Source of the DNA: Guillardia theta CCMP2712
Lineage: Eukaryota > Protista > Cryptophyta
NCBI RefSeq assembly: GCF_000315625.1
Contig: NW_005434568.1
Span: 144,582-208,581 of the forward strand
DNA: 64,000 nt
Direction of reading: 5' to 3'
Under the pieces are notes generated by a model, which searched no databases, was not told the DNA's origin, and saw only the letters and a list, made by a program, of their open reading frames with translations. Shown here piece after piece: positions 3,841-62,869 of this stretch. The number at the start of each line of letters is the position of its first letter. Position 1 is the first letter of the stretch. Made by a program: the position numbers and the translations under genes.

Positions 3841-6800
3841 ATGTATCCTGAGTTACAGATGGACACATTCCTCAAAGGATCGGTGACGTCACAGGAGGAA
3901 TTGGATGAACTTCTGCTTCCGATTCAGAATGCAATGAATCGATATCGGACAGGATTGGGCATGTGTTTGTTCCCGCTGATACGAGAGTTTCCACTCGATC
4001 AACTCGGTAATTTTGGTGGTGAGTTTCATACTGTATGGGAAAAGAACAAGAGTGTGAATGTGGATGGCGAGTTGACGGAGGAATGGAAAAGGCAGGTCGT
4101 TTTGCTTTTCCTGAATGCCAAATTTTGTTGGAGGAAGAGCGGGCAGATTCGAGATTATGTGGAGCAGTTGCAAAATTTGTCCAAGACGGTGTCGGATCAG
4201 TATGGTAGTCCTGTTGATGAAGGGGATTCCGGCAATCCAGTGAGTGCTTCTGGCAAGAAGAAAAAGAAGGGGGTAAGCCGAAGGGATTCTGATGGCAAGG
4301 AGATGGATGCCGCGATGATTAACGCGTTATATGAAGACGTTGAATATTTTCTCCTGGAGCTTGGCCAATACTTTCGATCCTATCTGAAGCCATTATTTCC
4401 TGTTCCATGGGCTATGTCAGGAGGATTCAAGTCCAAGTTGGCTCCGATCAAAGCTCTGGCGTATATGATATGGGAAGTCAGAAAGCGCAGTGGGAATCTC
4501 AATGCCACTCCGGATAAAACGCGGATGGAGCTTCTGACGCTGGCAAAGTCGAAATTGCCTGACATATCTACCTTCCACAGCGTTATGGTCCAGATGAAGA
4601 TCCTGCTTAACAAGTTGGAAGATGTAGCGGGAGAGGAATCAGTGAAAGCCTTGGAAATGATTTTGGTGGAGGAGCTGATCAAGCAATGTTATGTTTCAGA
4701 TTGTATTGATATTCGAGATGTCGCGCGCTTGAATAAGCGGTCCAAGTTGTCAACCGAATTGACTTGGGAGGAGGTGTACTCTTGGGCTGTGAATTTGCAT
4801 GATGAACAGGTATTTTTTACTGCTGGGGGTGAGAAAACACAGTCGGGCACTGCGTCAGTTAATGTGGCAGCCTCGGAGGTGCAAGCTACGGTTAGTCAAC
4901 CGAATGCAGACAAGGCGTCTGAAAGTGGAGGACAGGGTGGTAAGGAAAAGGGAGACTCGAGAGGCAGCAATGAGTCGCCGCCTGTGGATAATGCATCTGG
5001 CAGTCAGGAGGATGGAAGCACGTTGGACGCGAGGGAGAGTACGCGAGGCCGAGGTGAGCATCCGGGTCAGGGAATGCGGCGCAGGGGCGCCTACCATGTT
5101 GATGGGTCTCGTGGCGGCTACGGTCGTGGAGGCTCCGCTGGTGCTGGATCGAATGATTTTCGAAATCACCAAGGAAGAGTCGGTGGTTTTCAAGGGAATA
5201 ATTTTCGGGGAAGAGGCTCAGGATTTCGAGGTCATCATCAGCAGCGGGGGAAGCCGTATGATCGTCCGGCTGGTAGAGGGATGCGCGGACGAGGTAGAGG
5301 GGAGCATTGGACGACGCATAACTACAATCCACGCAGAGGCGAGTCTGATGGTTTCTCAAGAGGTGATCGTTCGGGAGGACATCATGAGCGGCGAAACAAT
5401 GTGCATGAATTTTCTCCTCAGGCTCTCGGCGAGGCTGTACTGCGGTTGGCCAGGGAAATCCAGGGGGGAAGGAGGTCAGGTGCAGACGGTGAGCAGCCGG
5501 TTGGACCATGGCAGGAGACGTTTGAGCCTAACCATCGGGGACGTGGCCGTAGTCCGGTGTCGGACAATCCTTTTGAGAGGACGGTACAGCAAAATGTTTC
5601 AGAAAGCAATGCTCAGGCAGGTCGCCGTCAGGCGGAATGGCGATCCTTCTTTGCGTTTCAGTTTGGCATTGATTCAACGATGTCGATGACTGATATTCAA
5701 GGAATGGCAATGCAGAGTATGGTGGGAGACGGTGACGGAAGGGTTGTCAATTTTTTGCTTGATTCGGGTGCAAATGTTACCATGGTTGGGGACGAATCCC
5801 TCCTCTCAGACGTACAATCGGGAGACGATTTCTTTGTCATGACGGCAGGAGGAAAGATTAATTGTACCAAGTATGGCAAGCTAAATTTGCAAATTGTCGG
5901 TGCAGATGGTGAGTCGGACAATATAGTATTGGAGAATGTTCGAGTTTGTCCTGTCCTTCCTGTACCACTTGTGAGTCTGGATGATTTTCTGGGATCCAAG
6001 TATTACATTGTTGGACGGGGGTCGAAGAACACGGTCAAATCCTATGTGGCTTCGGAGGATGGCAAGATCAGGATTCCTCTGATTCAGCGGGACAAGTTGT
6101 ATCTGTTGACAACCAGAGGTCCGATGCATGATTCTGTGGCAGGTGATGTGCCAATCTTTTGTGTTTCAGCGGAGGCTGGAACAGTTTGTTTGACTAAAGC
6201 ACATGTCACTCCTGGACCTTCTTTCGATGGGAAGTCAACACAGAGTCTATCTGATGCGGTTCTGTGGCACATGAAAACGGGGCACCCTGATTGTCGAGTA
6301 CAGAAGTTGCTTGCGGATACGGTCAAATACATTACATTCAATAGGCGGTTGATTCATTCTCCGTGTCACGTGTGTAGGATTTCGAAATTTGTGTCAAGCC
6401 CTGTTCACAAACAAACCTCATTTCGACAGGAACGTGTTGGAGATGTAAATGCTCTGTGGTATGTAGACTTGAAAGATATGATTGCAGTCTCTGAACCATC
6501 GGGTTATCGTTACTTTCTTATAGTTGTCGACGCTTTTTCCGGATACCTGATTGTGCGTCCCATGACGTCCAAGGGTCAAACGAGTGATATTCTGATGGAG
6601 TTACTTCGACAGGAGGAGAAAAGTGTCAAGAGAAACGGAGTTCAACGCATCATATCTGATAACGGCAGTGAGTTTTCTTCTTCAGAGTTGGAGGCATTCG
6701 TTCGTGAGACGGGTTTGAAGTGGGATCGGATTCCTGATTACAGTCAAGTTTACAATTCGCTGGCTGAGAGAGGAATTCGAGCAGTCAGTACTATCCACAG

Positions 6801-7512
6801 AACTTTGCTCAAACAGAGTGCTTTGCCTATCGAGAAATGGGAATTTTCTGTTATGCAGGCTACGTACCTGTACAATGCTCTCCCGAGTTTCAGGAATTTC
6901 GGCAATCTTTCTCCGTATACAATCTATAATGGAGATGTTTTCGACTTCAAATCTCTCAAGACCTTTGGGTGTATGACATTCTTCAAGAATAATGTACGCA
7001 GTTCGAAGATTGAAGATCCAGCTAAACAGGGCATTATGCTCGGAAATGCAAACGCTTTTCCTGGGCATACGATTGGCTACTTGGTATGGTGTGTTGACGA
7101 CAACAAAATCTGTCACACGAATAATCTGACCTGTGATGAATTCTTCTTTCCATTTCGACGTGCGGGACGGATGAATTGGCAAGAGGATCCTGAAGTGGTG
7201 GTAAAGCACGATATTGACATGGAGGATGATTCGCCTGTCAAGGGTGTTGAAGATGAACGGTCAGAGGCAGTGAATGCTCGGACTAGTGGTCGTCGAAAGA
7301 GAACACGGTTGGAGGATCATTCACTGGAGTCGGATGATGAGGGAGTAAGGGCTGCTGAGATGGTGTGCCAGGACAGCGATGAAGATTATGTGCCTACAGT
7401 GATGGTTGACGGTGGCCGAGAGGATGCGGATCATACGGATACAGAGGCAGCGTCGTCGACCAAAACATGTCGTACCAGACGAGACTTTCGTACATTCCAT
7501 GGTATTTTCTAA
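3841..7512 (+). CDS. Copia Gag, aspartic protease and integrase; ORF terminates inside the inserted element
   Basis: Protease FLLDSGANVTM; HHCC LWHMKTGH...CHVC; integrase WYVDL...IISDNGSEF...LAERGIR; FGC...KIEDPAKQGIMLG...GYLVW. Confidence 0.95.
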   Translation: MYPELQMDTFLKGSVTSQEELDELLLPIQNAMNRYRTGLGMCLFPLIREFPLDQLGNFGGEFHTVWEKNKSVNVDGELTEEWKRQVVLLFLNAKFCWRKSGQIRDYVEQLQNLSKTVSDQYGSPVDEGDSGNPVSASGKKKKKGVSRRDSDGKEMDAAMINALYEDVEYFLLELGQYFRSYLKPLFPVPWAMSGGFKSKLAPIKALAYMIWEVRKRSGNLNATPDKTRMELLTLAKSKLPDISTFHSVMVQMKILLNKLEDVAGEESVKALEMILVEELIKQCYVSDCIDIRDVARLNKRSKLSTELTWEEVYSWAVNLHDEQVFFTAGGEKTQSGTASVNVAASEVQATVSQPNADKASESGGQGGKEKGDSRGSNESPPVDNASGSQEDGSTLDARESTRGRGEHPGQGMRRRGAYHVDGSRGGYGRGGSAGAGSNDFRNHQGRVGGFQGNNFRGRGSGFRGHHQQRGKPYDRPAGRGMRGRGRGEHWTTHNYNPRRGESDGFSRGDRSGGHHERRNNVHEFSPQALGEAVLRLAREIQGGRRSGADGEQPVGPWQETFEPNHRGRGRSPVSDNPFERTVQQNVSESNAQAGRRQAEWRSFFAFQFGIDSTMSMTDIQGMAMQSMVGDGDGRVVNFLLDSGANVTMVGDESLLSDVQSGDDFFVMTAGGKINCTKYGKLNLQIVGADGESDNIVLENVRVCPVLPVPLVSLDDFLGSKYYIVGRGSKNTVKSYVASEDGKIRIPLIQRDKLYLLTTRGPMHDSVAGDVPIFCVSAEAGTVCLTKAHVTPGPSFDGKSTQSLSDAVLWHMKTGHPDCRVQKLLADTVKYITFNRRLIHSPCHVCRISKFVSSPVHKQTSFRQERVGDVNALWYVDLKDMIAVSEPSGYRYFLIVVDAFSGYLIVRPMTSKGQTSDILMELLRQEEKSVKRNGVQRIISDNGSEFSSSELEAFVRETGLKWDRIPDYSQVYNSLAERGIRAVSTIHRTLLKQSALPIEKWEFSVMQATYLYNALPSFRNFGNLSPYTIYNGDVFDFKSLKTFGCMTFFKNNVRSSKIEDPAKQGIMLGNANAFPGHTIGYLVWCVDDNKICHTNNLTCDEFFFPFRRAGRMNWQEDPEVVVKHDIDMEDDSPVKGVEDERSEAVNARTSGRRKRTRLEDHSLESDDEGVRAAEMVCQDSDEDYVPTVMVDGGREDADHTDTEAASSTKTCRTRRDFRTFHGIF

Positions 7513-34200: not shown

Positions 34201-35282
34201 TACCGCTGCCATGGTCCCACCCCCACCCCTGTCCCTGACACTCACAGCTACCCCTGGTCAGCCTAGGACGGTAGTAACAAGGAACGGGACCGTGCCGTCG
34301 TGCTGAAGATCACTATGATGAGGGGGGTGGTCGAGAGCCTCTCCCCGTCCCCCCGGAGGGGTGGGGGTTCGAGCATCATGACGATCCGAGTCCGTACAGT
34401 CTTAAAAAGGAGAGGGATAGGGGTGGTTGTTACGGTGAGGGAGGGTGGTAGGGTGTTTGGGGGGGGGGGGGGGGGGGGGGGTACTATTGCCATATGGGGA
34501 ATGCTGTTTTGCTGAACGATCCCCGAAGGAAGGTAGGGGGGTGGGGTGAATACAAGGAGGGGGTGGGGGTGGAAGGGCGGAAGCAGGTAACAGCGTGTCA
34601 CGGGGGTGAGGGCATAACCTCAAAGATCATTTGCACAGCGGGTAGGGTAGGGTGTTAATACTACCCGTACTGAGAACGTTGAAAAGGGAGGGTTGGGGTA
34701 ATCAACTCGATCAAGGGTAGGGTACCGCAGGAAAGTTTGTAGATACGAGATGTCCTGGGGTACACCGGCATGGAATTAGTAGGGTAGGGGTACGGTACAG
34801 GGGTGGCCCTAGGGTCGACGACAATGTGTTGGAACAAACGATGAGCGACGGGAGGGCCAGGAGGAGGGAGAATGAGCAGACGTGTTGTGGTAGGACAAGA
34901 TGAGTTGGGATGAGATGAAGTAAGACAGGATGAGAAGGACAAGATGAAGTACGATGGGATGAGATGATGTGAGGTAGGATGAAGTTGGATGGCACGAGAA
35001 GTACTAGGATGATGTAGAACTGAAGGTGCAGCATGAGATGGTGAGGCGATGCTGAACAGATATGGGCATTATTTGATTTCAAAAAGATGGTAGATTGAAA
35101 TGAGAGCTCGAACTCTCTTGTTGCGCACTGCAGCCGTCGAAAGAGCTCATCTCACCCGTGACATGCAGACGATGCGTTGTTGGAGGATCGGCGCCAGTGG
35201 CAGGAGATCGCAGCATGCTGATGGGGCTGCTTCTTGTGGGCGTGCGATCGCTTTCATGTGTTTGCTCTAAAAGGACAAGTCA

Positions 35283-35610
35283 ATGGACGAGTTTCAATCC
35301 TGGGACTCTGCCATGAACGGTGACGGAGAGCGTGGGATACCCGAGGAGGATCAATCAAGGGAGACGCGCTCATCCCCAGGGACTGACGGAGAGGAGGACG
35401 TTGAGATGTCTGTAGGAGGAAGCGATCGAATTGTACCTCAGCAGCAGGAAGCATCGTTGAATGTGGGGATCCTCCAGGAGCAGAATCGAAGACTCTACTT
35501 TCAGCTGCTGCAGAAGGCAGAACGGACGGTGGCTGAGGGTGGGAAAAACTTTCCTCCGATGTTTGTAAAAGAGAAGGAGCAAGAGAAGGAGCAAGAGCAG
35601 GAGAAGGAGA

Positions 35611-35658
<48 letters not shown>

Positions 35659-38600
35659 AGCAACCTACCTTGTCACAGGTTTACCAGCAAGACGGGGAAC
35701 AGAATCATGCCGACGCTTTCAATGCCGAGTTCTTCCTTCATCACTTCCAAACGTCGGATGTGCAAGCAAGCAAGCGATCCCTCCGGTTCTCAGAGCCGCA
35801 GACTAAGTTGAGCAGCTCGGAGCTGATGATGCCCAACGCCAAGTTCTCATACTTCGATCGCCTTGACCCCTTCTTCCTTCGAAGATACCTCAAGACTCCG
35901 CTGGTGTCTCATCCCATGGCGTTGCCGAAGCCTCTGACAGTTGTTGCAGAAACGTCTCAAGAATCAGTTCACAATGGTGGTGGACAATTCGGATCAAATG
36001 GATTCTTTCCTGCAAGACACCCACAAACCAAGCGCGGTAAAGAAACATACCTCACCTCGCTCTACCTAGACATGTTGTCATCTCAGCGACATCTCTTCAC
36101 AACAGCGGTGCATCAAAGTGACACGAAATGGATGCAGGTGATGAACTCGTTGAACTCAGCCAAGTCTAAGTTGGTTCGAGCTGGAAGTTTCATGAAAGTT
36201 CCCGCAAAGCCCCCGATAATCAACGAGGTGCAGGCGGACTGACGCGATTGTCTTGATGACTGGATAGCAGGAGCCAGAGGACGCAGAAGACGTTGATGAA
36301 GCAGATGATGATGCTGGAGCGTCGAACATCTCCCTGTACCTCAGCGCAGGTTCTAGAGGATAGATGTTCAGAGAATCGTGATGATGTTGCTTCTTCAGGT
36401 TTCATCGTGATCTTGGCATGCATGGATGCTTGTTTGTTCATGGTTTGACTTGAAGATGTTGTGGAAACTTTGAATAACGATGATTGCAGATCTTTCAAAT
36501 GTTTTGGCGAGGAGATTTTGTTTGCAACCCTCCTCAAGTGAATCTGGGAAATGTCGTCCCGCTCTCAGTCTTGCTGGGACTGTACTTCTTTAGAATGGTG
36601 AGCAGACGAGTAAGAGCTACCACGGTTTGACATGCTGGGATGCAGACCAATCGGCTCAAGTCGAAGCAATACACTCTCACCTCATGCTTCAATCTTAACG
36701 AGCTGCTGCATGTGATCCCATGGAACTCTTTGATCTTCCTTCTCCTCGTCATCTCCTCTGCTGGTCTTCCTCCCCCTCCCCTGTCAAGGTCTGACGGACA
36801 AGCAGCGATCCTCGTCGTCGAGTGTCAGCAATGCCGACAAGGGCAGGTCCGGCATGGCATCCTCCTCCGCTTCGACCTGGTCCTGCACTTCGGGTCTGCC
36901 TTGCCTCTCACCCTCTCTCGCGTGACTCCCTCTGGTCGGCAGCCGCGTGCTGCTGGCGATCAGGCTCTGCTTGAAGCTCAAGAAGCAGCTGAGGAGGAGG
37001 CTGCAAAGTGGTGCGGCGTGAGGGTGGTTGGCTGGCGGGTCTGAGACAGACTGCAGCTGTCAGCTTGAACAAGAGGCGGTTTCAAGACAGGTTTGCCGAC
37101 TTGGACTTGGGTAACCCGCAGCCCTTGACTGCTCGACTCGACTGATCCCCTCATCAGATCTCACCTACATCTGCGATCGCTTGATTGGCATGGCGTTGCC
37201 CTGCGTCGATGGTGACGTCACTTGTGTGGCCCTCTCAGATGCCTGACAACCCCCAGGCGCCATGCACAGGAATGACATCCGCGACGTCGCCAAGTTCTTC
37301 TCCACTCGTCACTACGGTCATCCGCCTCCCGTGGTGTCTCGGAGCATGACTGACGACTGGGGTGTCAAGCAGGAAGTTTCCTCATCTTCAACCTCTGTGA
37401 AGCACAAGAGGTGCCTGCATGCTCGCCGGCGGTTCGATGAGTGATGACGTGGCATGTGCTCTCGGCAGGAGAGCGGCAACGGAAACTACGACACGCGCCT
37501 GCTCTACGGTCAAGTCAAGAAGCTTCCCTTCAGGGATCACAACATCTGCAAGCTGCGGAGCCTCGTCAGTTTCTGCGAGCATGCGACTGAGTTCCTGAAC
37601 GAAAGCGATGAGAACGTAGTAGCCATACACTGCCAGGCAAGTCACGACCTGACGGCAGCCGCTTGCAAGTTTGAAAGTTTTTTTCGTCAGGGTGGGAAGG
37701 GCAGGACAGGCACGTTCTGCTCCTCTCTGATGCTCTGGACGAATCTCTTTCAGTCTGCCGATCTCGCTCTGTCCTACTTCGCCAGTAGAAGGACTGACAC
37801 GAGCCGCGGGAGCGGTGAGCTACAGAAAGTGGCGGCCCCGTCGCAGATCCGTAAGTGACCGTGTGGACTAGGAGAGTCTAACAGTTGCCGCAGGATACGT
37901 CAAGTACATGGAAACCTTGATCAAGGACAACGTGGACTACATCTCCAGCACCAAAGTCATCCTGAGTCGCATCTCGATGCATGGGGTTCCGATGCTGGAC
38001 CAAGAAGTCTGCAACCTGACGTTCGGTCCGTCCTTGTTCCCCCCCGGCTCCACCCCAGCTGACGTGCGGCATCGCAGTGATCGAAGTGAACGGAGAGCTA
38101 GAGTATGATCACGGCAAAGCAGCTGGGATGACTCGTTGCTGCAAGGAGCTGCGGGATGACTGGATCTTCGACGTGGGATTTGTGCTCCTCTCCGACGACG
38201 TCGCCGTCAGGTTCTTCTACTTCAGGTGAGGATGACGTGGCACATGCTGGTCCCTCCCAGTCATTCTCTCTCGCAGCTCCGATGCCGAACCCTCGTCGAT
38301 TGTCGGCAAGACTGCTGAGATCCAGCCGGGGGGGCGCGAGATCATGTACGGCAGTCTAAAGGGGAAGCAGGTGCGTGCGAATAGCTCCTCCTCCTCCTCC
38401 TCCTCCTCCTCCCCTTGTCCTCCTCCTCATCGTCCTCTCCTTGTCCTCCTCCTCCTCTGACCTCTCGCCAGCTGTTCTTCGTCCAGTTTCACACGGCATT
38501 CCATTCCAACGACCTGACGCTGAGCAAGAGCGAGATCGACGGGGCGTACAAGAAGAAGAGTCACAAGTTCGCCGATGACTTTTCCCTCCGCTTCCACTTC

Positions 38601-40715
38601 TGGAAGGACATGGGGGTCGACAGCCACGAGAGTCTCGAGGAGTTGTACCAGCCCCCTCGCTCCCCAAAACGCTCTCCTCCTCGCTCTCCCATTCGCTCTC
38701 CTCCTCGCTCTCCCAGTCACTCTCCCGGCCGCTCCCCGGCGAGGTCGCCGGATCCGATGCTGGACAGCGAGGCGGGTCGGTACTCGATCCTAAAGTGGGG
38801 AGCCTTCCTGTCCCTCCCCCCTTGCCTGAGGGTCTTCAACCTGGCGCTGTGGCTGGACGATCTTTTCCAAGTGATCGCCACTGACTGCCGCGTCTACTCG
38901 AGGGGCGAGATCGTCTACAACCCGGAGGAGTCTGACCGCTCCCTGCACTTCATCTCCTCAGGCAACCTCATCCTCGACACCAGCGAGGGCAAGGCCAAGG
39001 AGCGAAGCCTGGGCAGCGGGCTCTACGAGGAGGAGATGGTATGGGGGGCGAGGGAGTTCTTTGGCGAGCTTTCCTTCCTCCTCGGAAACGGGCAGGACAA
39101 CACCAGCGGAGTATTGCGAGCATACTCGGAGCAGGTGGAAGTTCGTTCGCTCAGGCTGTCGGAGCTGAGCAGAGACCCTCTCGGCATCCCCCCCCTCGTC
39201 TGTGAGAACCTGAGCCCTAGGGACCTTGACATCCTGTACGAGGCCCTCGCAAGGTGAGAGACTTCTGGTCTTGGCCTGAGGGCTGACAAGGTGGCTGGCA
39301 GGCAAGTTTGCAGTGACGCCATCAAGAACGACATCTACCTGCACTTCGTGGCGCTGCAGGTGGGAGGAGGCGGGTGGGCCCGAGGTCGCTGACTGCTCCC
39401 CAGCAAAACACCAAGAGGGACAAGAACTCTTCGCTGATTGAGATCCACCAGGCCTCTTTTCTCAACAGCATCCGAGACAAGCACAAGATTCCGGCCATGG
39501 AGCCGCACAAGTTTCTGTCCGGGGCCACGTACCTGAGAGGGTCTCGCAAGCGGTCGAAGTCGAACATCTTCCAGAAGGGGGAGATCAAGGGAGTGTTTGT
39601 GGTGTTCCAGGACGTGATAGGATACGCCGAGTACATGTGCCAGGTGTCGATCCAGACGAAGCAGATCTCAGGCATTGAAGTGATCGGCGACACTCTGATG
39701 ATCAGCCTGTCGACTGAAAAGAGCTCGGGGAGGAGAATGAGCGAAGGAAGGAGGGTGAGCGAGGTCGACGATGGGCTCATCGAACGGCTGGGGTCGAGGA
39801 TGAAGGCGTCTTACAGCTTTCAGTTCGTCTCTTCTGACTGCGCACAGAGCGCGCAGGCGATGATTCTTTCCCTCAAGAACACCAGGGACGATGAGATTGA
39901 GACGATCGATGAGGAGCTGTCGAGCCAGCAGGACAGGAATATCGACCCCATGCATGTCGCCAAGTTGTTTCACTTCGTGGACGAGAGCGAGGCTCTAGAG
40001 TTCTCCGAGGGCTCGACGCTAGACGAGCTCTTCTCCGTCTTCTCCATTATCTGGTCGAGCCTCGCGCCCTCGTTCCTCCCTCACGTCCTGCTCAGGTACA
40101 AGAAGGGCAGCCTCATCATCGACATCGGAGAGACGAGGCGGACTCTCTTCCACATCGTGTCCGGGTCGATCATCGCCTGCGGGAGCGACGGCAACATCCG
40201 GGTCAAGCGAGGCAAGGGCGAGCTCTTCGGCGAGGTGAGTTACTTCAGCACCGGCAACAAGGGCGCTCTCTCCAAGGTAAGCTCCTGCCCAGCTGCATCC
40301 CACGAGGCTCAGGGGTGTGCAGGTCGTGGCAGAGGAGGAGACGTGCTGCATGGAGATCCATAACGACGTGAGAGGAGGAGCGTTTGGCCCTCGTTGCTGA
40401 CCCTCCGGCAGGACGTGGAGCGACTGAGAGCTCGGCGGCCTCTCCTGACCGCGCGAATGTGAGCTGAGAAGATCCGACGCTCGCCACTTGCCTCCCCACC
40501 TGCCCTCATCCTCCGCTCACTCGTCACTTCACCTTCTCCCCCTTCGCCCCTCCCTGCTCTTATTTCGTCTCCTTCCTTCCTCTCCCTCTTCGTCTTTCCC
40601 TGGGCTAACTGAATGTTGCAGAAATCGAGCCATCGCCCGTAACGTGGCCTACCGGCTACAGGAGCAGTTCAGACGCATCAGCCACAGCCCGATTTACATG
40701 AGCTCTAAGGGCTGA
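35283..40715 (+). CDS. Voltage-sensing-phosphatase/PTEN-like protein: degenerate 4-TM voltage sensor, PTP, C2, cNMP-binding fold, PH/GRAM-like, second cNMP-binding fold
   Basis: Spliced VSLNKRRFQDRFADLDLDLTYICDRLIGMALP, HRNDIRDVAKFF, PFRDHN, HCQ|GGKGRTG, PSQIRYVKY, FFVQFHTAF...IDGAYK; two FGE-containing cNMP folds. Confidence 0.88.
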
Positions 40716-40812
40716 GAGAGGAGAGGAGGAAAGGGACACGAGGGAGCAAATCAGTCTCGCTGCTGCTTCATGCTCTCATGGTACCGCTGACTCTTCCTAA
40801 TCCACTAGGGTT

Positions 40813-43800
40813 TCACCATAACTTTCTCACTACTGGCGGGGGGTGACGCCTTGGAAGAGTTCGTACTGCAGTACTATCAGGAGGAGGAGGAGGAGGAGAG
40901 AGGAAAGAGGAGAGAGGAAAGAGGAGGAGGAAGGAAAGGAAAGGAAAGGAAAGGAAAGGGGGTTGTGGGAGGAGGCTCAGTGTTTCTTACCTGTCGCTCG
41001 GAGATCTGCCTCTGGGCCTCGCGCAAGAAATCAAGGAACGAGGAGCACCTGCTACCTCATTAGAATCCCTTCCTGTCCTTCCCCTTCCCCTCCCTTTCAC
41101 TCTCATCTTCCCTTCCCCTCCCTTTCACTCTCATCTTCCCTTCCCCTCCCTTTCACTCTCATCTTCCCTTCCCCTCCCTTTCACTCTCATCTTCCCTTCC
41201 CCAGCATTCCTCCCTTGGCTGCTCTCCTTGGCATTCCCCGCCTTCCATCGCTCACCTCTTAACTCGAGCTGCTCGAGCATCGCTGGCAGAGTCGAGGAGC
41301 ATCGCCGCCATGTCGATCGCCGCTCTGATGACACATCAGCTGGGCAAGGAGGAAGGATTGAGACCGACCGGTGCTCCTGGAGCTCGAGAGCAAAGCTGAC
41401 CTCGAACCTGCCCTTGGGTCAGACGAGCACTTGATACCCAGACCTGAAGTTTGACCTGTCCACGGCTTCCTTGCAAGGCTGCATGCTGATATCTGCGACG
41501 CTCTCTGCATCATCGTCACCCTCCTCATCCTCCTCATCCTTTCTCCTCTCACCCGCACATTCATGCGCGCGCTCCCTTAGGGCCTTGGCAATCTCGTCGC
41601 CAATGAGCTGCTTTATCTGAGGTCTACGTGAGAGGGGAAGGGAGGGGAGTCCAACACCCTCACCTGCTTCTCCGTCTCATGCCCAGCGCTTCTGATTGCC
41701 AGCCAAGAACTCGCTGCTGCTCCTAGCGCTGCATCCGAGTGACTTGGAGAGACACGAGGAGTCCTCGCCCTCACCTCCCATGAACGCATACGCGTATGAC
41801 GCCATCAAGTTGCAGCACATGACCGCAATGAGCGAGCTGGACACCGGATGAGTACTCGAGGAAGGAAGGGAGGAGAAGGGAGGGAGGAGGGGGGGAGGAG
41901 AGAAGCTAACCGGAAGCCATTGGTTACTCCCCAGTAAGAGATCAGCCTGGTACTGAAGAAAGGAAGTGCAGAGGAGATAGCTGTGAGCAGGGACACAGTC
42001 ACTCGAAGACCCGAGGACCTGACGACCAGCCTCCGCCTCTTACCGGAGATTCTGTTCGGCTTCTCGCGGGCGTGCTGTAGGGCGTCTCTTTGCCCTGCAG
42101 CTCCCCAAACCGCAGCTACGATGTCCTCCATCTCAGTGATCTGACACTTGCGTTCAGTCGGCTGAAGAAAAGGCAAAGGGCTGACCTGAAGATGCGCCTG
42201 CTTGCCCAGGTGGCGCTCGACTTCCGATGACTTCTTCTCGACTTGAGGAAGCAGGATGTCCATCGTCCATCGTTCCGAGATCTCCTCGAGCTTGCACCGC
42301 AGGTATTGCTCCACATGGTGAGCAAACTCGCACCGGGTGGTAGCGGAGAAAGCTCCAGTCAGCCCGACTCGTTGACTAACTTGCGCATGCATGGCGAGCT
42401 CGGGGACTTTATCCGCCAACCCCCTGAAGTGATCCTCTGCGAGCTGCCTAACCTCATCGCGCTGGCGGCTGTAGTCCAGGCGAACTTGTCGGAGAGTCTT
42501 CTCGTGCTGGTCTTGGAGCTCCAAGAGCCTCGGCAGACAAGACTCCTGCAGCGACCTCACCTGCAGCGCCACAACCTCGTCAGCTTCCCGCGACCAGCTC
42601 CAACTCAGCACCTCCGTCGGCTGCCTTTCGAGCAGAGCTCCCGTCCTCTCCACTTGGTCATACAAGAACTTGACGAATCTGGACGCAAGACGGATCATGT
42701 CTTGTGACCTCGCATGCGCATGACGCTCGAGAAACGAAGCAAGCCCTCCCTCCAGAGCCTTCATTTGCGAGATTGTTCGATCCAGCACGGCTCGACGGTT
42801 GTTCACGCCAGGTACACAGAAGATGGGAGCTTTCAGCTCAGCAGCCTTGGCTCGGGCCTCGGAGAAGACCTGCGGCTGTTACTGACCTCCCTCTCTCGCA
42901 TACATCTCCACGGTACCTCGGCATCCTCGGTCCCGTCGCTGACGACGACGATGAAGACAGATCCCTTCAGGATGCATCAAGAAATCTTCACGACCTCGAG
43001 CTCGAGCTCTTACCTCGGGCAGGTACTGCAGAGCTTGTCTGACAGGCCACCAATCGAAGCCCTTCAGCAGCGTCAGCGACGGGAAAGAACCAAGGCCTCT
43101 GCAAGCTTCCCCACCTCGTCTGCGTTCACCACGAACACGATCCCGTCCGCCTGCCTCTTCAAGGCCGTGGCAACGATGTCCACCTTGAGCGAGTGAGGAG
43201 GAGATGAGGGCGATGAAACATTCAGTCACCTCCTTCACCGTCGGCCCATCAACAATCTCAAGACCGTCTACCAGCGCTGAGGCCCCTCCAAGGAACACCT
43301 GCCACACCATCCATCAGAATGGGTCCTGGCTCCTCCTCTCCCCTCTCGCTGTACAACAGCACGAGGGCACACGGCATGCTTTCATACCTCAAGGCTGTCA
43401 ACCAGCGCAAGCGTTGACGAGCGGATGTCCTCCCACGAGCAGTCCATGGGCTCGTTGTGGTGGCCCAGCACCTCCACCAACTCCTTCTTGCTGTTGCTGC
43501 GGTGTGCGCATGATGAACGGCAGACAACGAGATGATCCTTGCCTGCGAAAGGGGAACGAGGCTCCATTGATGCGCAGGTGCTCCCGAATGGAAGGATGCA
43601 GCGAGTTATCCGAGATCTGTCAAAGAAAGCATGTCAGAGTTTTCCATTGCACGGAACGAACAATCGCAAAGGGCATGACCTCTTCTTCAGTCAGGTCTTG
43701 TCGAAAATGTACAAATACAACAAACTCATTCTCCAACACTTGCCCAGCATCGTTGTTGCGATAACGTACCGTTACCTTGTCACTGGACAGAACCCTCTCG

Positions 43801-47942: not shown

Positions 47943-48563
47943 CCTGTGGATTCTGCTGTGACGGCGGCGGCCTTTGAACTTTCGAACTGTTATTTGAAGT
48001 ATCGGAACTAGAGCTGCAGGCTGAGGGCCCCGGGCCCGGCCCACGGCTGGCGGGGGCCGGAGGGAAGAGGGGGCAAGGGAGTGAGGACTGAGACGGTATC
48101 TTACACGGTGTGTGTGGGTGAAGCTGATCAAAACGGTTGACCGTCCGCCGCAGTGTTCAAAGGTTTGCTTGTCCGATCATTCTACCAGTTCGTACTGCAC
48201 TACCTCACCCGGCCGCAAAGTCTACCGTACAGTAGCACCGTACGGTGTATCAGATCCGTTCAGTCGGACAGCTAGGGCTTACAAATCCGCCCCAGAGTAC
48301 GGTAAGGAAAAGAGAAGGGGCAGCAACGTTCGGTGGGTTCCTGGTGAAAAAAAAACAAACGAGGCTCCCACGACAAATTGCGGTACTGCTACCGGTGGTT
48401 TTCGGATTGTTTAGAGTACTACCCCCATATTCCCATCTGTGTACCGGTCTATCCCTGGGTACTACTGCTCGCATCCTCCAAATGTACCCACCCCCTTTCC
48501 CTCCAGGTACCAGAAAGTTCCTTTGCCTCCGCTCCCTCCCATCCTACACCGCACGTACTCGCT

Positions 48564-50474
48564 ATGTCAGACAGGTTCTTTAATGCAGGCTGCTGGGACA
48601 TCCAAGGTACATCCTGGCAAGAGTATGAGCGGTATCCAATGCTCAAACTTCCACCACCACCGGCAGCAGCAACAACAACACCAGAACCAGAACCAGAACC
48701 AGATCTAGAACCAGAACCACCAACATATGCTCCTCTTAATCATCATCAGGCTGAGGTCAGTGGAAATACGGAGTTTGCAGAACAAACCCAAGCACCTACT
48801 CATTCGGACCATGTTATGAAGATGATTGACAGCAACCTGCTGGACATTGGATTCGAGCCTCAACAAGGCTTCGATCAAACAAATCCGTTTTCCTCTTCGC
48901 TTCTCACATCCAACAAAGAAGTTTCGGATACGAACCAGCAGCTCTCCAGTGTCAAAGAAAGACCTGGACCTAGGCGAACTATGTTGACAGAATTGTTCCC
49001 GAAACAAGCAGCAAATCCGAATCCCATCGGGGAGACGGAAAGACAATTCTTGGATGAGGGCTGCACGGTGTTTGGCGACGTCTTTGGTAAGATTGAGCCC
49101 GATGAGTCGAGAGGAACTCTGTGGTCATCAGACGCATTGAGCCCAAGCACGTTGACACAACGTCTGACCTCAAGCAGGTTACCATGCAACGACATATTGA
49201 GCACGACAACAGATCAGATTAAGCTCCAGCGTGCAAGCGAAGCGACGAAAGCTCTCGACAACGAGCAGGCAGCGAGCACATCTTGCTCAAGCAGCGAGCA
49301 CCTGTTGCTTAAGCAGCGAGCACCTGTTGCTCAAGCAGCGAGCACATCTTGCTCAAGCACTTCCTCGTCCTCCGGCTCGATGACTTGCGTGCCAACAACT
49401 CCCAAGGAGTCTTACTGCTCTAAAAGACAATTGGTTGCTGTGGAAGTTGACGGGCCTGCCCTGCCTGCTTTTCACAGCCACAAGTCAGCATTGCTGGATT
49501 CCATGTTGCTGTCGATTGTACAACAAACCAGCGCCCGGATGAACTTGGCTCCAGACAAGCTCAAGACGTTTGCATTGAGTCTCCTGCTAGATGCTTACGC
49601 TGTACAGACTGTTCTTCCATCGAAGCAATCGAATCAAGTGCTGCACTACAAAGTCCGGGCCTTTGTTGAAGCTCTCATCAAATCGCCACTCGAACTGGAC
49701 AGCGAAAGTTCTTATGTCGTGTGCGTTCGTGTCGAGACGGCAGAAGAAGACTTTGATTGGACTGCTGCAAAGAAGAATCGAAGGATCATGTACAGAGAGC
49801 AGGGCGTGCTCTGGGAGCTCATCGCTGTCGTTTCTGCTGTCTCTCTCGAGCAGCCGACTGCAGAGCAGTTTCAACATCACAAAGTCAGGGTTATCAAAAG
49901 AACGATGGGCATTGATACCGACTCCCAGAACGAGCAGGAGCAGGAGCAGGGGGATCATAACTGGAGTGCTCAGCTGTCCAACTTTGCGAATAGAGCAGGC
50001 CTGCAAACTTGGGTTGTTGACGCACAAAACAGGAACAATTTCAACCAGTCCGTTATGCAGGATGCCGATGGGGTCTACAAGCTGGTGCTGATCTACTCCC
50101 CAGACAAGGCGGAGCGCGAGAACAAGAAGGTTGACCACAAGAACAATGCCAAGAAGCAGAAACTTCAAGAAAAGAAGAAGGCAGACGCCGCCAGGAAAGG
50201 TGAGAGTCTCAAACTCGATCTCGTGCCATTGAAGGAGCCTCGCCTTCGAGTGACTCCCACGGTTTGGCAGGCCCTGAGACCGTCACAGAGTCACGCCGTG
50301 CCCAGCGGGCCGGGGGGCCGCGGGGCGCGCCGCCGGCCGCCGCCCCGCACTGCGGACCTGACACCACCCGCCGGTCACCCGCCGCACCCGGGGCCGCCGC
50401 GCGAGCCTGAGTCGCCGCAGGCGGCGGCGGCCGCCGGGCCGCCCGGGCCGGTAGCCTTGCCGCTAGTAGCCTAG
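48564..50474 (+). CDS. Hypothetical protein with a disordered N-terminal half, a globular C-terminal half and a Lys-rich tail; 3' end uncertain
   Basis: ORF of more than 600 codons; a possible splice donor GGTGAG near 50200 lies before the ORF runs into a GC block. Confidence 0.75.
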   Translation: MSDRFFNAGCWDIQGTSWQEYERYPMLKLPPPPAAATTTPEPEPEPDLEPEPPTYAPLNHHQAEVSGNTEFAEQTQAPTHSDHVMKMIDSNLLDIGFEPQQGFDQTNPFSSSLLTSNKEVSDTNQQLSSVKERPGPRRTMLTELFPKQAANPNPIGETERQFLDEGCTVFGDVFGKIEPDESRGTLWSSDALSPSTLTQRLTSSRLPCNDILSTTTDQIKLQRASEATKALDNEQAASTSCSSSEHLLLKQRAPVAQAASTSCSSTSSSSGSMTCVPTTPKESYCSKRQLVAVEVDGPALPAFHSHKSALLDSMLLSIVQQTSARMNLAPDKLKTFALSLLLDAYAVQTVLPSKQSNQVLHYKVRAFVEALIKSPLELDSESSYVVCVRVETAEEDFDWTAAKKNRRIMYREQGVLWELIAVVSAVSLEQPTAEQFQHHKVRVIKRTMGIDTDSQNEQEQEQGDHNWSAQLSNFANRAGLQTWVVDAQNRNNFNQSVMQDADGVYKLVLIYSPDKAERENKKVDHKNNAKKQKLQEKKKADAARKGESLKLDLVPLKEPRLRVTPTVWQALRPSQSHAVPSGPGGRGARRRPPPRTADLTPPAGHPPHPGPPREPESPQAAAAAGPPGPVALPLVA

Positions 50475-59491: not shown

Positions 59492-62400
59492 TCAGCCTCG
59501 TGCTTCCTCCTCTCCCTCTCTACCCCCGACTCTGCTGCCTCCCTCTGACCTAAACGTCTGTGCCAACTGCCCTCCTCCTCCCCCTCCCTGCCTCTCCTTC
59601 TCCCCCTCCTCCTCCCCCACCCTGCCTCTCCTTCTCCCCCTCCTCCTCCCCCTCCCTGCCTCTCCTTCTCCCCACCTCCTCCTCCTCCCTGCCTCTCCTT
59701 CTCCCCCTCCTCCTCCTCTTACCCGGCTTTCTCTTCTTGTCGGACTTGTCGGACTTGTCGGGCTTGGCCTGTCACACGAGTCATCGTGTAAAAAAGAAGC
59801 GTGCGGGGAGATGGGACCAGGCGATCCAAGGGTGAGGAGGGAGGAGGAAAGCGAGGAGGAGAGCAGAGCAGAGTAGAGCAGAGCAGAGCAGAGCAGAGCA
59901 GAGCAGAGCAGAGGAGGAGGAGAGGAGAGGAGAGGAGAGGAGAGGAGAGGAGAGGAGAGGAGAGGAGAGGAGGAGGAAGGAGGAGGANNNNNNNNNNNNN
60001 NNNNNNNNNNNNNNNNNNNNNNNNNNNNNNNNNNNNNNNNNNNNNNNNNNNNNNNNNNNNNNNNNNNNNNNNNNNNNNNNNNNNNNNAGGGGGCGGAGGA
60101 GATGAGGAGACCTTGGGGTTGCCCTGGAACTCAAGCTCGACGTAGGGGATGTCCCAATCCCAGATCTTGTCTCCTCCCGGGTTGCTGGGGTCGTAAGGAG
60201 GAAGCAGTTCCTGCACTTTGTCGCAGAACTTCTTAAACTCCCTGTCGAGCTTGCTAACCATCTCCTTCTGCCTTTGCTCGTCTTCGATCTCGTCCCTGTC
60301 GTAGGGGTTCTTTCTCTTGTTCTCCATCAGACTTTCTCCGTCCTCTAGCCACTCCAGGAAGAACTGGATGTCTCGAGTCGACTGCTTGCCGATCATGATG
60401 GCGTTCTTGAGACGGAAGTGGAGGAGGATGAGGTTGCTGTGCTTGTTCGAGGGCTGGAAGAAGGCATGCTTGATGTTGCGGTACAGGATGTCGATGTGCT
60501 TCAGGTCGGGGGACGGGGCCTTCTTGACTGCAAACCGAAAGCCGTTGACGTGCGCCTCAAGATCTCCTTCCGTCTTCCTTCCTCTCGCCTGGATGTTGGG
60601 GTAGATCCTCAGGTTCTGGAGCCTGGGCCCTCTGTTGGGGTTCAGCCGGAGAGGCTCCTGGGGGACGAGCTCGTCTCTTGCCTTCCTTTCTCGCTCCTCC
60701 TGCTGGTACGTCTTCTTCATCGCCATGATCTGCTGGTGGACGAGGATGAGGTTCTGACTCTCCTGCGCGCGGTAGGAGAGCTCACGGAGGTAGATCGCGT
60801 CCTTGTTGACCCCGATGGACACGCCTGCTCCTGGGCTCACAAAGTTGATGCGGAGAACATTTCCGGCGATTCCTTGCGACTGGATGCTGGCGTTCTTGAC
60901 TGTGGAGATGTGGAAGGGGACGGGAAGGCCGTTGATGGGGACGAGGATGGTCTGAGCTGCCTCGTCGATGTAGAGCTGAAGGTAGCCCTTGTTGCTCCAT
61001 GCACGTGAAGGAAAATCTTCAGTTCCGAGGTACCCCGAAGTCTGAGACCTCTCGCGCTTGTCATCAGATCCTGAGGACTCGTTATACCTCCTCCTCCTCT
61101 GCTCTTCCACTCTCTGCAGGGCGAGCTGGTTGTTTCTTTCCTCGAAGTCCTTCCTTGCCTGCTCCTTCTCCTCCTCCGACAGCTTGTGGGACAACTTCTG
61201 TTTCTCGAGCTCCTTCAACTTTCTGTCGAGCTCGTCCTGTACAGACTTCTTGTTGTCGGATTTCTTCTCCTCGTCTCCGTCGTCTGACACGTTCCAAGAG
61301 ACTTTGCTGTGCTTTTTCGGAGCGTTTGTCAGGCACTCCGCACCGTCCTTAGTGATGAGGAATGTGTCCGCCAGCAGCATCGAGTACTTGGAGCTCTTTG
61401 GGTCTTTCGACTGAATGCTAAGGTTTTCAAGCCCAATTCTCAGGCACACCAGCATCCCAACTTTCAGTGTACTTCTGTTCTTCTCGTCGAACACGAATCG
61501 CTTCTCCCTCAGCTCGTAACCTAAGCTCCAGCCCAGCTCCTTGGTAAGGTTGCCAAGCAAACTTGGCTTCTTTGACTTGAGAAGGTCACTTGCCGCCTCG
61601 TACACCTTGTTCATCCTTGTGCCAGGCTTCAGCAGCCCCTGGCATTTTTCCACCACCTCCAGCAGCAGCCGATAGTTTGCTTCCTGCTCGGGCTTAACAT
61701 TGAACAGCAATGTGCGGGCCAACATGCCGAAGCAGGACTTGACCCGGAGAGAAACAGAGCTGATGTAAATAGCTGGGACTCCCTTGTCAGGGAGGTTCAG
61801 GGGGGATTCCTCCGTCAGAGCCGAGTACTTAAGGTCGTAGGTGCCGCTCTGCACGTTGGGGGGGATAACAACTTCCACATCCTCGACGTCCACAGGAAGC
61901 TGAAGAGGCGCAATGGTCTTGGGAAGCTCGTTCTCCACATGCTCCGAGATCTTGGTCAGCATGAACTTCTCATTGCTGTCAACTACGTCGAGGATTTTAT
62001 TGAGGCAGCTCTTGAACGCTGCTGTGTTGATGGTACCTGCCTGTCTTGCCGCCTCGACCTGCTTGTCTGACTTGATGGCAAGGAAGTCCGTCAGTCCGTT
62101 GGTGATGTCGACTTTGGAGATTCCGCTGGCCTCCCCCAAAAAGCTGTTCCATTCCTGCGCGAATGACCCATCGTACTTCTCCTTCAGGAGAGTCCCAACC
62201 TTGGTCTCGCTCCGTTCCTCCTTCATCTCTCCAAGAATGTACTGAAAGTTCGCCTTGTCCTTGTCGCTCTTGTCACGAACGCGGACTTCAACCTTGGTGG
62301 GGAACTTGGACGGAAGGTCATCCGCCAAGGCCTGCAGCACCCTCGCCTTCTTGCTCGCCGCAAGGAATATGATCTTCTTCGGACACAGCACGGTCAAGAT

Positions 62401-62869
62401 GTCGTGCAGCTCTAGTGAGAACATCGCTGCAGAAACAAAGTGTCATCCTACTTGACAGCCAGCCAGCTCCGCAAGGCAGCATCCAACAGCACACGGTCAA
62501 CAAGCATCGGACCTGTAATGAGAGATTGAGCCTTTGGGAACTTGATCACGTCCTTGGAGTCCGAGTCGCAGGCAATGGCAATCACATCAGCCTTCGGTCC
62601 CCATGCATCCGTGTCCTTCTCAGCCTGCACAAATCCATGATGAAGGATCAGGTGAAGAGCAGAGCGACGACTACCTTCCATTTCTCGTAGAGTCTTCCGC
62701 AGACATCGGTGAACTGAGAGGCGGAGAAAAGAACCTTTCCATCATCCTTCTTGTCACCACCTCCTTCCTGCTTCACCTCCACCTTAACTTTCGCATCCTT
62801 GACCTCCTTGGCATGGTTAGGGTCCTCCTTGGCCTCCTCCTTGACCTTTATCTTCTCTTCGTCGGCCAT
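59492..62869 (-). CDS. SPT16: FACT complex subunit SPT16; part of the C-terminal region is missing across the gap at 59988-60087
   Basis: Peptidase-M24-like N domain (VQSGTYDLK, ARTLL, LLADT), VPFHISTVKN, LRINF, LEAHVNGFRF, DILYRNIKHAFFQP, DRDEIEDEQ. Confidence 0.96.

Follow-up and report, generated by a model that had tools for sequence, protein, structure and literature searches.

Voltage-sensing phosphatases (VSPs) are known as a three-part design, a voltage sensor followed by a phosphatase and a C2 domain, and nearly all work on them has been done in animals. The animal proteins, including Ci-VSP and TPTE/TPTE2 (PDB 4g7v, 3awe, 9c49), comprise in this order a sensor of four transmembrane (4-TM) helices, an interdomain linker of the form NKRR[YF]...DLDLTY, a PTEN-type phosphatase, and C2. 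Choanoflagellate VSPs have also been mentioned (PMC12223298). The gene described here lies in a 64,000-nucleotide stretch of the cryptophyte Guillardia theta CCMP2712 (contig NW_005434568.1 of assembly GCF_000315625.1, positions 144,582 to 208,581 of the forward strand), referred to below as the window. Its predicted product shares with the animal VSPs the order of parts, a P-loop of the form HCxGGKGRTG with Gly, the spacing of basic residues in the fourth sensor helix (S4) as measured from the linker, and an Asp in the first (S1). Unlike them, it carries in addition an N-terminus of approximately 315 residues and a 570-residue tail composed of an RSPx linker, a cyclic nucleotide-binding (CNB)-like fold, a PH-like domain, and a CNB domain.

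Two further groups of described proteins bear on this architecture. PTEN has the same phosphatase and C2 folds, the same catalytic Asp, Cys, and Arg, and an N-terminal basic lipid-binding motif followed by DLDLTY, but is soluble, and its P-loop Ala and the Thr-Ile of the TI loop, which set 3-phosphatase specificity (PMC6182344), are replaced in the window protein by Gly and Ala-Ala, respectively. An S4-type sensor and a CNB domain also occur together on one chain in the sperm Na+/H+ exchanger SLC9C1 and in HCN and CNG channels, and SLC9C1 demonstrates that such a pair can gate an effector other than a channel (PMC6052114; review PMC13095418). In the window protein, by contrast, the predicted effector is a lipid phosphatase and not a transporter or pore, and two CNB folds surround a PH-like domain, neither of them with the Arg of the phosphate-binding cassette.

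Three-frame translation and explicit splicing of the window yield one open frame on the plus strand, from the ATG at 35283 to the TGA at 40713-40715. The spliced coding sequence (CDS) is 4257 nt long and encodes 1418 amino acids in 22 exons with 0 internal stops. It is read here, from sequence comparison, as a single gene for a membrane-anchored PTEN-type phosphatase of the VSP lineage extended by a CNB-PH-CNB tail, an architecture that is real, selected, and expressed. The motifs and four hydrophobic helices quoted in the original prediction are all present at the expected places of the 1418-residue model, and the domain order that it proposed, voltage-sensing domain (VSD)-PTP-C2-CNB-PH-CNB, has been borne out by Pfam, hhalign, AlphaFold, and fold matches. 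By the same comparisons the protein descends from VSPs while lacking two of their defining features, the S4 arginine run with its counter-charges and the Glu-Thr pair of the gating loop. The broader reading, of an expressed and selected gene for a VSP-lineage multi-domain phosphoinositide phosphatase in which S4 would be coupled to the enzyme and the tail would be regulatory, is given a probability of roughly 60%.

Phosphatase, linker and membrane domain

The segment that joins the membrane domain to the enzyme, TVSLNKRRFQDRFADLDLDLTY (aa 484-505), consists of a basic motif (TVSLNKRRF, beginning at aa 484) followed by DLDLTY (beginning at aa 500). The motif is conserved in 40 or more relatives, including a bird VSP (P0067), and is found in Ci-VSP and TPTE2 as well; exons 8-9, which encode it here, are identical (100%) in a close ortholog from an environmental metagenome (L001, described below).

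For Pfam and PDB comparisons single exons or homologs served as queries, and the spliced model was used for local alignment. Exon 12 matches PTEN in the PDB at 2.5e-7, and exons 12 and 13 together match Ci-VSP best of all solved catalytic domains (6.5e-11), followed by PTEN (6e-10) and TPTE2 (7e-10), with the two exons abutting exactly at ...AIHCQ/GGKGRTG... in the alignments. The P-loop HCQGGKGRTG occupies aa 606-615, with C607 as the nucleophile and R613 as the P-loop Arg, and D575 corresponds to the general acid (PTEN D92). Since all three residues are present an active enzyme is predicted, and the phosphatase should be active. In a set of 88 related catalytic domains the loop reads HCxGGKGRTG in all VSD-linked proteins and HCKAGKGRTG in the soluble PTEN-like ones, so that the P-loop Gly is, as originally proposed, a residue of the VSP type. 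The Gln that precedes it, in place of the Lys of animal VSPs, is a feature of one clade of relatives (group A, below), in which the loop reads HC[QR]GG; in the sister clade (group B) it reads HCKGG.

The specificity for D3 or D5 is set by the P-loop Gly or Ala together with the residue pair of the TI/ET loop, Gly combined with Glu-Thr conferring 5-phosphatase activity (PMC6182344). At this position the window protein has A656-A657, aligned to the Glu-Thr of Ci-VSP, and its relatives have Thr-Ser or Ser-Ser. Because Ala-Ala fits neither state, the substrate position is not readable from the sequence; a 3- and/or 5-phosphorylated phosphoinositide would be the expected substrate. The C2 domain is recognized by Pfam (PTEN_C2) at 1.1e-7 on part of exon 17. 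It is entire in intronless homologs, which score 3.7e-7 and 1.3e-10 and are alignable throughout.

The catalytic P-loop is itself interrupted by an intron. Intron 12 (37637-37690, GC-AG, 54 nt) separates HCQ from GGKGRTG, between Q608 and G609, and is in frame and free of stops, such that its retention would add 18 residues to the active site. A second side observation concerns more distant proteins of the haptophyte type (P0036-P0040, e.g., the PTEN-like P0037 of Chrysochromulina tobinii), several of which contain two tandem PTEN catalytic domains with two HCKAGKGRTG loops.

Hydropathy places four hydrophobic segments between aa 336 and 475, with S1 at approximately 336-360, S2 at 373-394, S3 at 410-439, and S4 at 450-475, directly N-terminal to the phosphatase. 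Relatives retrieved by word search fall into two clades, group A, which includes the window gene, and group B, whose sensors are canonical. Group B consists of protist proteins of the order VSD-PTEN-C2, several with a C-terminal cNMP_binding domain (P0044, P0045, P0053, P0062; Cryptomonas curvata UniRef A0A7S0MBP1), and shares with the window protein the linker, the Gly-Gly P-loop, and C2. Its sensors score Pfam Ion_trans over S1-S4 and have an S4 Arg at each third position, ELTLR in S2, and WNIFD in S3, characters that, like the HCKGG loop, have been lost or replaced in group A. A quick maximum-likelihood tree built on the phosphatase domain places groups A (support 97) and B (99) as sister clades, with a joint support of 97, and separates both from the animal VSP that was included and from PTEN-like proteins. 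Relatives of the window protein also occur in Cryptomonas curvata, and the closest named protein comes from Hanusia phi.

The four helices descend from a canonical VSP voltage sensor, by homology traced through intermediate sequences, because the sister clade is Ion_trans-positive and the two groups match profile to profile. Excluding the linker, hhalign of the group A 4-TM profile against group B sensors gives E 1.8e-5 with a probability of 78% over 144 columns, and E 5.5e-5 with the window model included. BLAST alignments of the model likewise pass through the Ion_trans (S1-S4) stretches of P0048, P0062, P0041, and P0065. The fold search was rejected as evidence in either direction: no Foldseek match reached E <= 0.001, that to the Ci-VSP sensor standing at E 0.16, and VIA-align gave Z 8.8-11.5 for S1-S4 domains with soluble helical bundles on the same level.

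S4 of the window protein contains R454, H460, R463, L466, and R469 at -34, -28, -25, -22, and -19 from the Asn of NKRR, matching the positions of R217, R223, R226, R229, and R232 of Ci-VSP. In ten members of group A the residues that do not vary are the S4 His, an Arg three residues further on, Asp and Cys in the motif DFxC that directly follows S1, and a Cys behind S3. The S1 Asp, nearly invariant in the same ten, is kept in the window protein. The two Cys motifs lie at aa 363-369 (WRGDFVC, 36370-36390) and aa 436-442 (VVECQQC, 36820-36840). Animal VSPs have no such invariant Cys pair, nor has group B with its canonical sensors; in group A a disulfide might link the two extracellular loops of the sensor. 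The domain is thus read as a derived sensor with a reduced gating charge, a titratable His, and a possible loop disulfide.

Several of these results weigh against a working sensor. Two of the four sensing arginines of Ci-VSP are replaced, one by His and one by Leu, and the acidic counter-charges, Glu in S2 and Asp in S3 (E83 and D105 of A4), near-invariant in group B, are without counterpart in the window protein. An Ion_trans match is absent from group A in Pfam, and a sensor profile built from group A only had no match in the PDB at E <= 10. The AlphaFold model, a confident four-helix bundle with a predicted local-distance difference test score (pLDDT) of 86, was obtained for a proxy that is 37% identical (P0034:8-190) from an alignment that included canonical sensors.

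The strongest competing explanation, which retains about half the credence of the preferred reading, is a phosphatase that is anchored in the membrane but acts as a sensor of neither voltage nor cyclic nucleotides. In such a protein the four helices would be a decayed sensor kept as an anchor, or else a pH- or redox-sensitive module for which the invariant S4 His and the extracellular Cys pair would be suited. The losses just described speak for it, as does the invariance of DFxC and of the Cys after S3, with which a loop-to-loop disulfide is possible. Strict conservation of the linker, which in VSPs connects the sensor functionally to the enzyme, argues the other way, as do the three Arg and one His left in S4 and the conserved S1 Asp. 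The same explanation makes a claim about the tail, to which the remaining evidence applies.

The C-terminal tail and its possible inputs

Behind C2, eight [RH]SPx repeats (aa 849-880) lead into the first of two CNB-like folds. Beta-rolls are recognized by family models in both. The first, with FFGELSF at aa 982, retains G984-E985, has Q994 at the position of the cassette Arg, and has a longer loop. It is classed as a divergent CNB-like fold, from a match of its family profile to that of the second CNB domain (hhalign probability 96.8%, E 2.9e-10).

The last domain is assigned with greater assurance, from its sequence profile, as a solid CNB domain: the family profile matches PKG at 1.4e-17, in addition to CRP and HCN, and between the spliced domain and P0004 the alignment pairs 108:108 residues. 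Pfam cNMP_binding gives about 2.5e-5 to 2.8e-5 in a scan that extended to the end of exon 19, which is below the gathering score. The cassette, with LFGEVSY at aa 1340, reads F-G-E-V-S-Y-F-S-T-G-N-K-G-A, and includes G1342-E1343, K1352, and A1354. Nine of 16 relatives have Arg where the window protein has K1352 (consensus GNRGA). The original statement that both folds lack the cassette Arg is therefore nearly right, for Gln stands in the first and Lys in the second, although the family as a whole mostly has Arg at the latter position. Replacement of this Arg by Lys is the classical way of disabling a site of the PKA regulatory subunit. As K1352 replaces the Arg, weak binding of cyclic nucleotide monophosphates (cNMPs), or a different ligand, is to be expected.

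Between the two lies a domain of the PH superfold. The AlphaFold model of exon 19 begins with a helix, continues as a sandwich of seven strands, and closes with a long C-terminal helix, with strands at exon residues 37-141, a helix at 144-175, and a core pLDDT of 85-94. Foldseek matches it to FERM-F3, PTB, and PH domains with probability 1.00, and VIA-align to the F3 domain of 4.1R (Z 12.6) and to the PH-GRAM domains of MTMR6 (12.3) and MTMR2 (11.5), with TFIIH p62 also among the top; in both searches all matches listed are PH-superfold. The domain had first been called PH/GRAM-like. The fold class in this description is supported by the model and the structural matches; the GRAM part is not, since no sequence-family match accompanies it, and the domain is accordingly left at PH-like. 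What points to GRAM is the pair of myotubularin matches and a conserved family consensus, KFxIPxxExC...VF..I.F, which we take to be GRAM-like. Myotubularins resemble the window protein in combining a PH/GRAM-type fold with a Cys-based phosphoinositide phosphatase in one chain, but belong to a different phosphatase family and have a different domain order, and other PH-superfold classes score equally well. The look-alikes of exon 19 in the ESM Atlas, scoring at most 0.81, are leads only; they include clusters of CNNM CNB-homology domains.

The tail, too, supplies points against a ligand-binding regulator. The cassette Arg, which followed by Ser/Thr-Ala accompanies the Gly-Glu pair in canonical sites, is absent from both folds. 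The first fold stays below the Pfam gathering score (cNMP_binding, 1.8e-4), its profile finds in the PDB a marginal Crp/Fnr match (0.009) and no other, and the Gly-Glu pair is missing from the homologs L003 and L007. Pfam GRAM or PH gave no match at E <= 0.1 in 14 family members. If the protein sensed nothing, the CNB folds would be ligand-free, as in KCNH channels or CNNM, and would regulate the enzyme by contacts within the molecule or by way of a phosphorylated RSPx linker. The freedom of the cassette position among relatives of the second fold (R, K, I, H, V, A, and G all occur), the missing Gly-Glu pairs of the first, and the CNNM look-alikes are in keeping with this. On the other side, the second CNB domain keeps Gly-Glu, Ala, and a basic residue at the Arg position, where most relatives have Arg itself, and purifying selection has acted on the compared regions from the phosphatase to the PH-like domain.

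On the preferred reading, of a VSP-lineage phosphatase with a coupled S4 and a regulatory tail, movement or a change of state of S4 would be relayed, by analogy with Ci-VSP, along the basic linker and so reach the phosphatase on the membrane surface. With the partial gating charge that remains (R-H-R-L-R, with the invariant His-x-x-Arg and the S1 Asp), the response would probably be weaker, or shifted or pH-dependent; a steep voltage switch is probably not to be expected, because the gating charge is kept only in part and the S2 and S3 counter-charges are gone. The tail would most likely regulate or auto-inhibit the phosphatase-C2 unit. Its candidate ligand site is the second CNB domain, for a cNMP at low affinity or for another small ligand, while the first CNB-like fold may serve as a ligand-free docking domain and the PH-like domain may read membranes or lipids. 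That the protein integrates a membrane input and one from a small ligand, as envisaged in the original prediction, is plausible on these grounds, but this dual-input mechanism is weakened because the sensor is degenerate and the cassette Arg is missing.

Gene structure, selection and expression

The union of phosphatase and tail is most directly visible in exon 17 (38472-39253), a single stop-free exon that encodes the C-terminal end of the PTEN C2 domain together with the first cNMP fold, so that the two halves are physically one. When metagenome contigs were scanned with exons 12-13, nine related loci emerged, among them L003, an intronless metagenome sequence with one uninterrupted open reading frame (ORF) of 1777 aa, and L007, also intronless, with an ORF of 1195 aa. 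Alignments to both begin in the 4-TM region; that to L003 crosses the first CNB fold, reaches into the PH-like region, and resumes at the second CNB domain. The spliced model aligns to L003 over aa 321-1113 (36% identity over 891 aa, E 7e-154), with the last CNB domain aligning separately, and the single ORF of L003 contains Pfam matches to PTP, PTEN_C2, and cNMP_binding (3e-11). P0034 (1361 aa) has an equal architecture and lies on 14 Logan contigs of 2-5 kb, each of them mRNA-like with one long ORF. Of 102 related clusters, 12 have both PTEN and cNMP Pfam matches, and 4 of these 12 also have Ion_trans. Across the junction of exons 18 and 19 the transcript-derived protein of Hanusia phi (P0001, EP00960 P037224, 81% identical) reads continuously as ...ALQQNTKRDK.... 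Residues 219-292 of the same protein are a separate matter: the frame is lost after ...FSIIW and continues as another frame of the window, which indicates a frameshift or a retained piece in the transcriptome assembly.

That manual splicing might have falsely joined two neighboring genes, one for a VSP-like phosphatase and one for a cNMP-fold protein, is very improbable given exon 17, the uninterrupted ORFs of L003 and P0034, and the clusters that pair PTEN with cNMP matches, even though one transcriptome relative of 435 aa (P0002) starts close to where the first CNB fold ends and has the PH-like and CNB domains only; its ORF starts 14 nt from the end of its contig and may be truncated. The single-gene reading of the original prediction has thus held up, on the exon 17 fusion, the open 22-exon frame, and the single ORFs of homologs.

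The DNA of the region is of the eukaryotic type, with short introns. The 21 introns of the gene measure 40-163 nt (mean 56), and 20 are GT-AG, the exception being intron 12. The ortholog L001 (ENA ERZ930071, contig k127_125418, 1-2839, from an environmental metagenome) is 93% identical to positions 37014-39902 of the window, which places a close relative of the source organism in that sample. Exons are 94.3% identical and introns 85.6%, splice dinucleotides are kept in all eleven complete introns of L001, including the GC donor of intron 12, and the ratio of nonsynonymous to synonymous substitution rates (dN/dS) is 0.075 over 734 codons. Exon indels are in frame only and located in linkers: an in-frame 24-nt deletion leaves L001 without two of the RSPx repeats, and another indel removes six residues of a disordered loop of the PH-like domain. 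The gene is accordingly regarded, from this comparison, as being under purifying selection.

Expression was assessed by the share of 31-mers from positions 35100-40900 in an index of sequencing runs. A fully spliced mRNA would give an expected share of 0.687, the CDS alone 0.623, and a transcript without exon 1 0.497. Nine RNA-type runs from five studies have shares of 0.55-0.68, and the 2011 DNA-type runs have 0.86-0.91. The RNA values fit expression of all exons with the introns removed, as a property of pooled words and not as proof of one continuous molecule, and, as they exceed 0.497, point to inclusion of exon 1 in the transcript.

A protein with the exact window sequence was not found in protein collections by a representative search with exon 19 or by word searches with exons 17 and 1; the only matches were the Hanusia phi fragment (81% identity), a metagenome fragment 95% identical, and a distant relative of 435 aa. 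This absence, and the retroelement-like ORFs and variable GC of the surrounding window, could suggest a decaying or unexpressed copy amid transposon-rich DNA, but the intact frame through 22 exons, the low dN/dS, the splice sites kept in the ortholog, and the RNA-type runs with the word share of a spliced mRNA leave this the least probable of all the explanations considered.

The 5' end of the model is defined less sharply. A TAA lies in frame 15 nt 5' of the ATG, and BLAST alignments to continuous ORFs of the relatives P0019, P0021, and P0030 cover the last ~50-70 residues of exon 1. Pfam found nothing significant in this exon, and the homolog search, with query words of low complexity, gave no match. 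The case for its attachment consists of the frame, the splice sites, the weak terminal homology, and the word-share argument, and exon 1 is to that extent a weak point of the model. It contains a GAGCAG/GAGAAG microsatellite (35575-35660) that encodes a (KE/EQ)n run and swamped the word-based search. The features of the gene are collected in the table.

Table. Features of the predicted phosphatase gene, in window coordinates
Feature	Coordinates	Strand	Basis
Exon 1: N-terminal cytoplasmic region, aa 1-315, low complexity, (EQ)n run	35283..36227	+	
Exons 2-7: four-helix membrane domain, VSD-derived, aa 316-483	36268..37007	+	hydropathy, BLAST, hhalign
Exons 8-9 and intron 8: VSP-type interdomain linker TVSLNKRRF...DLDLTY, start of phosphatase domain	37057..37211	+	conserved motif
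Exons 10-14 (part): PTEN-type phosphatase core	37257..37930	+	PDB matches
Exons 14 (part)-17 (part): PTEN-type C2 domain	37931..38618	+	Pfam PTEN_C2
Linker with eight [RH]SPx repeats, aa 846-880, within exon 17	38649..38753	+	direct reading
Exon 17 (rest) and exon 18: first CNB-like fold, aa 885-1066	38766..39359	+	Pfam, hhalign
Exon 19, first part: PH-superfold domain with disordered insert, aa 1067-1240	39404..39925	+	AlphaFold model, fold search
Exon 19 (end)-exon 22: second CNB domain, aa 1285-1418	40058..40715	+	Pfam, profile matches

Downstream of the gene, at 41040-41200, lies a tandem repeat with a unit of ~29 nt (cttcccttcccctccctttcactctcat), with purine-rich simple repeats before the repeat array. 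Large ORFs elsewhere in the window are found at 3841-7512, 48378-50474, and 59719-62424 (-), and encode 1223, 698, and 901 aa, respectively.

Implications for the VSP family

The combination of domains is widespread in protist sequences, such that the window protein is by no means unique, yet full-text searches found no paper that describes a VSP with a CNB tail; the original impression of an uncharacterized architecture was to this extent correct. The window gene and dozens of environmental relatives constitute a large protist branch of the VSP family, and the CNB-PH-CNB tail present in many members represents a second possible regulatory input. The sub-branch with remodelled sensors and its canonical sister branch form a natural series on how far coupling tolerates the loss of gating charge, and the family is a possible source of tools for manipulating phosphoinositides under new control inputs.

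A more far-reaching proposal, and at present a doubtful one, is that cryptophytes and other flagellate protists possess lipid phosphatases that read a membrane signal (voltage combined with pH, through the S4 His) and a cytosolic ligand (through a non-canonical CNB domain) and convert them into phosphoinositide changes. If true, channelrhodopsin current in a phototactic alga would be linked, with neither Ca2+ nor a kinase in between, to phosphoinositide-dependent control of flagella or trafficking. The protein is in any case a candidate effector downstream of membrane-potential signals in algae, and should both tail and sensor prove inert, it would still be a clear instance of domain accretion on a PTEN-type enzyme.

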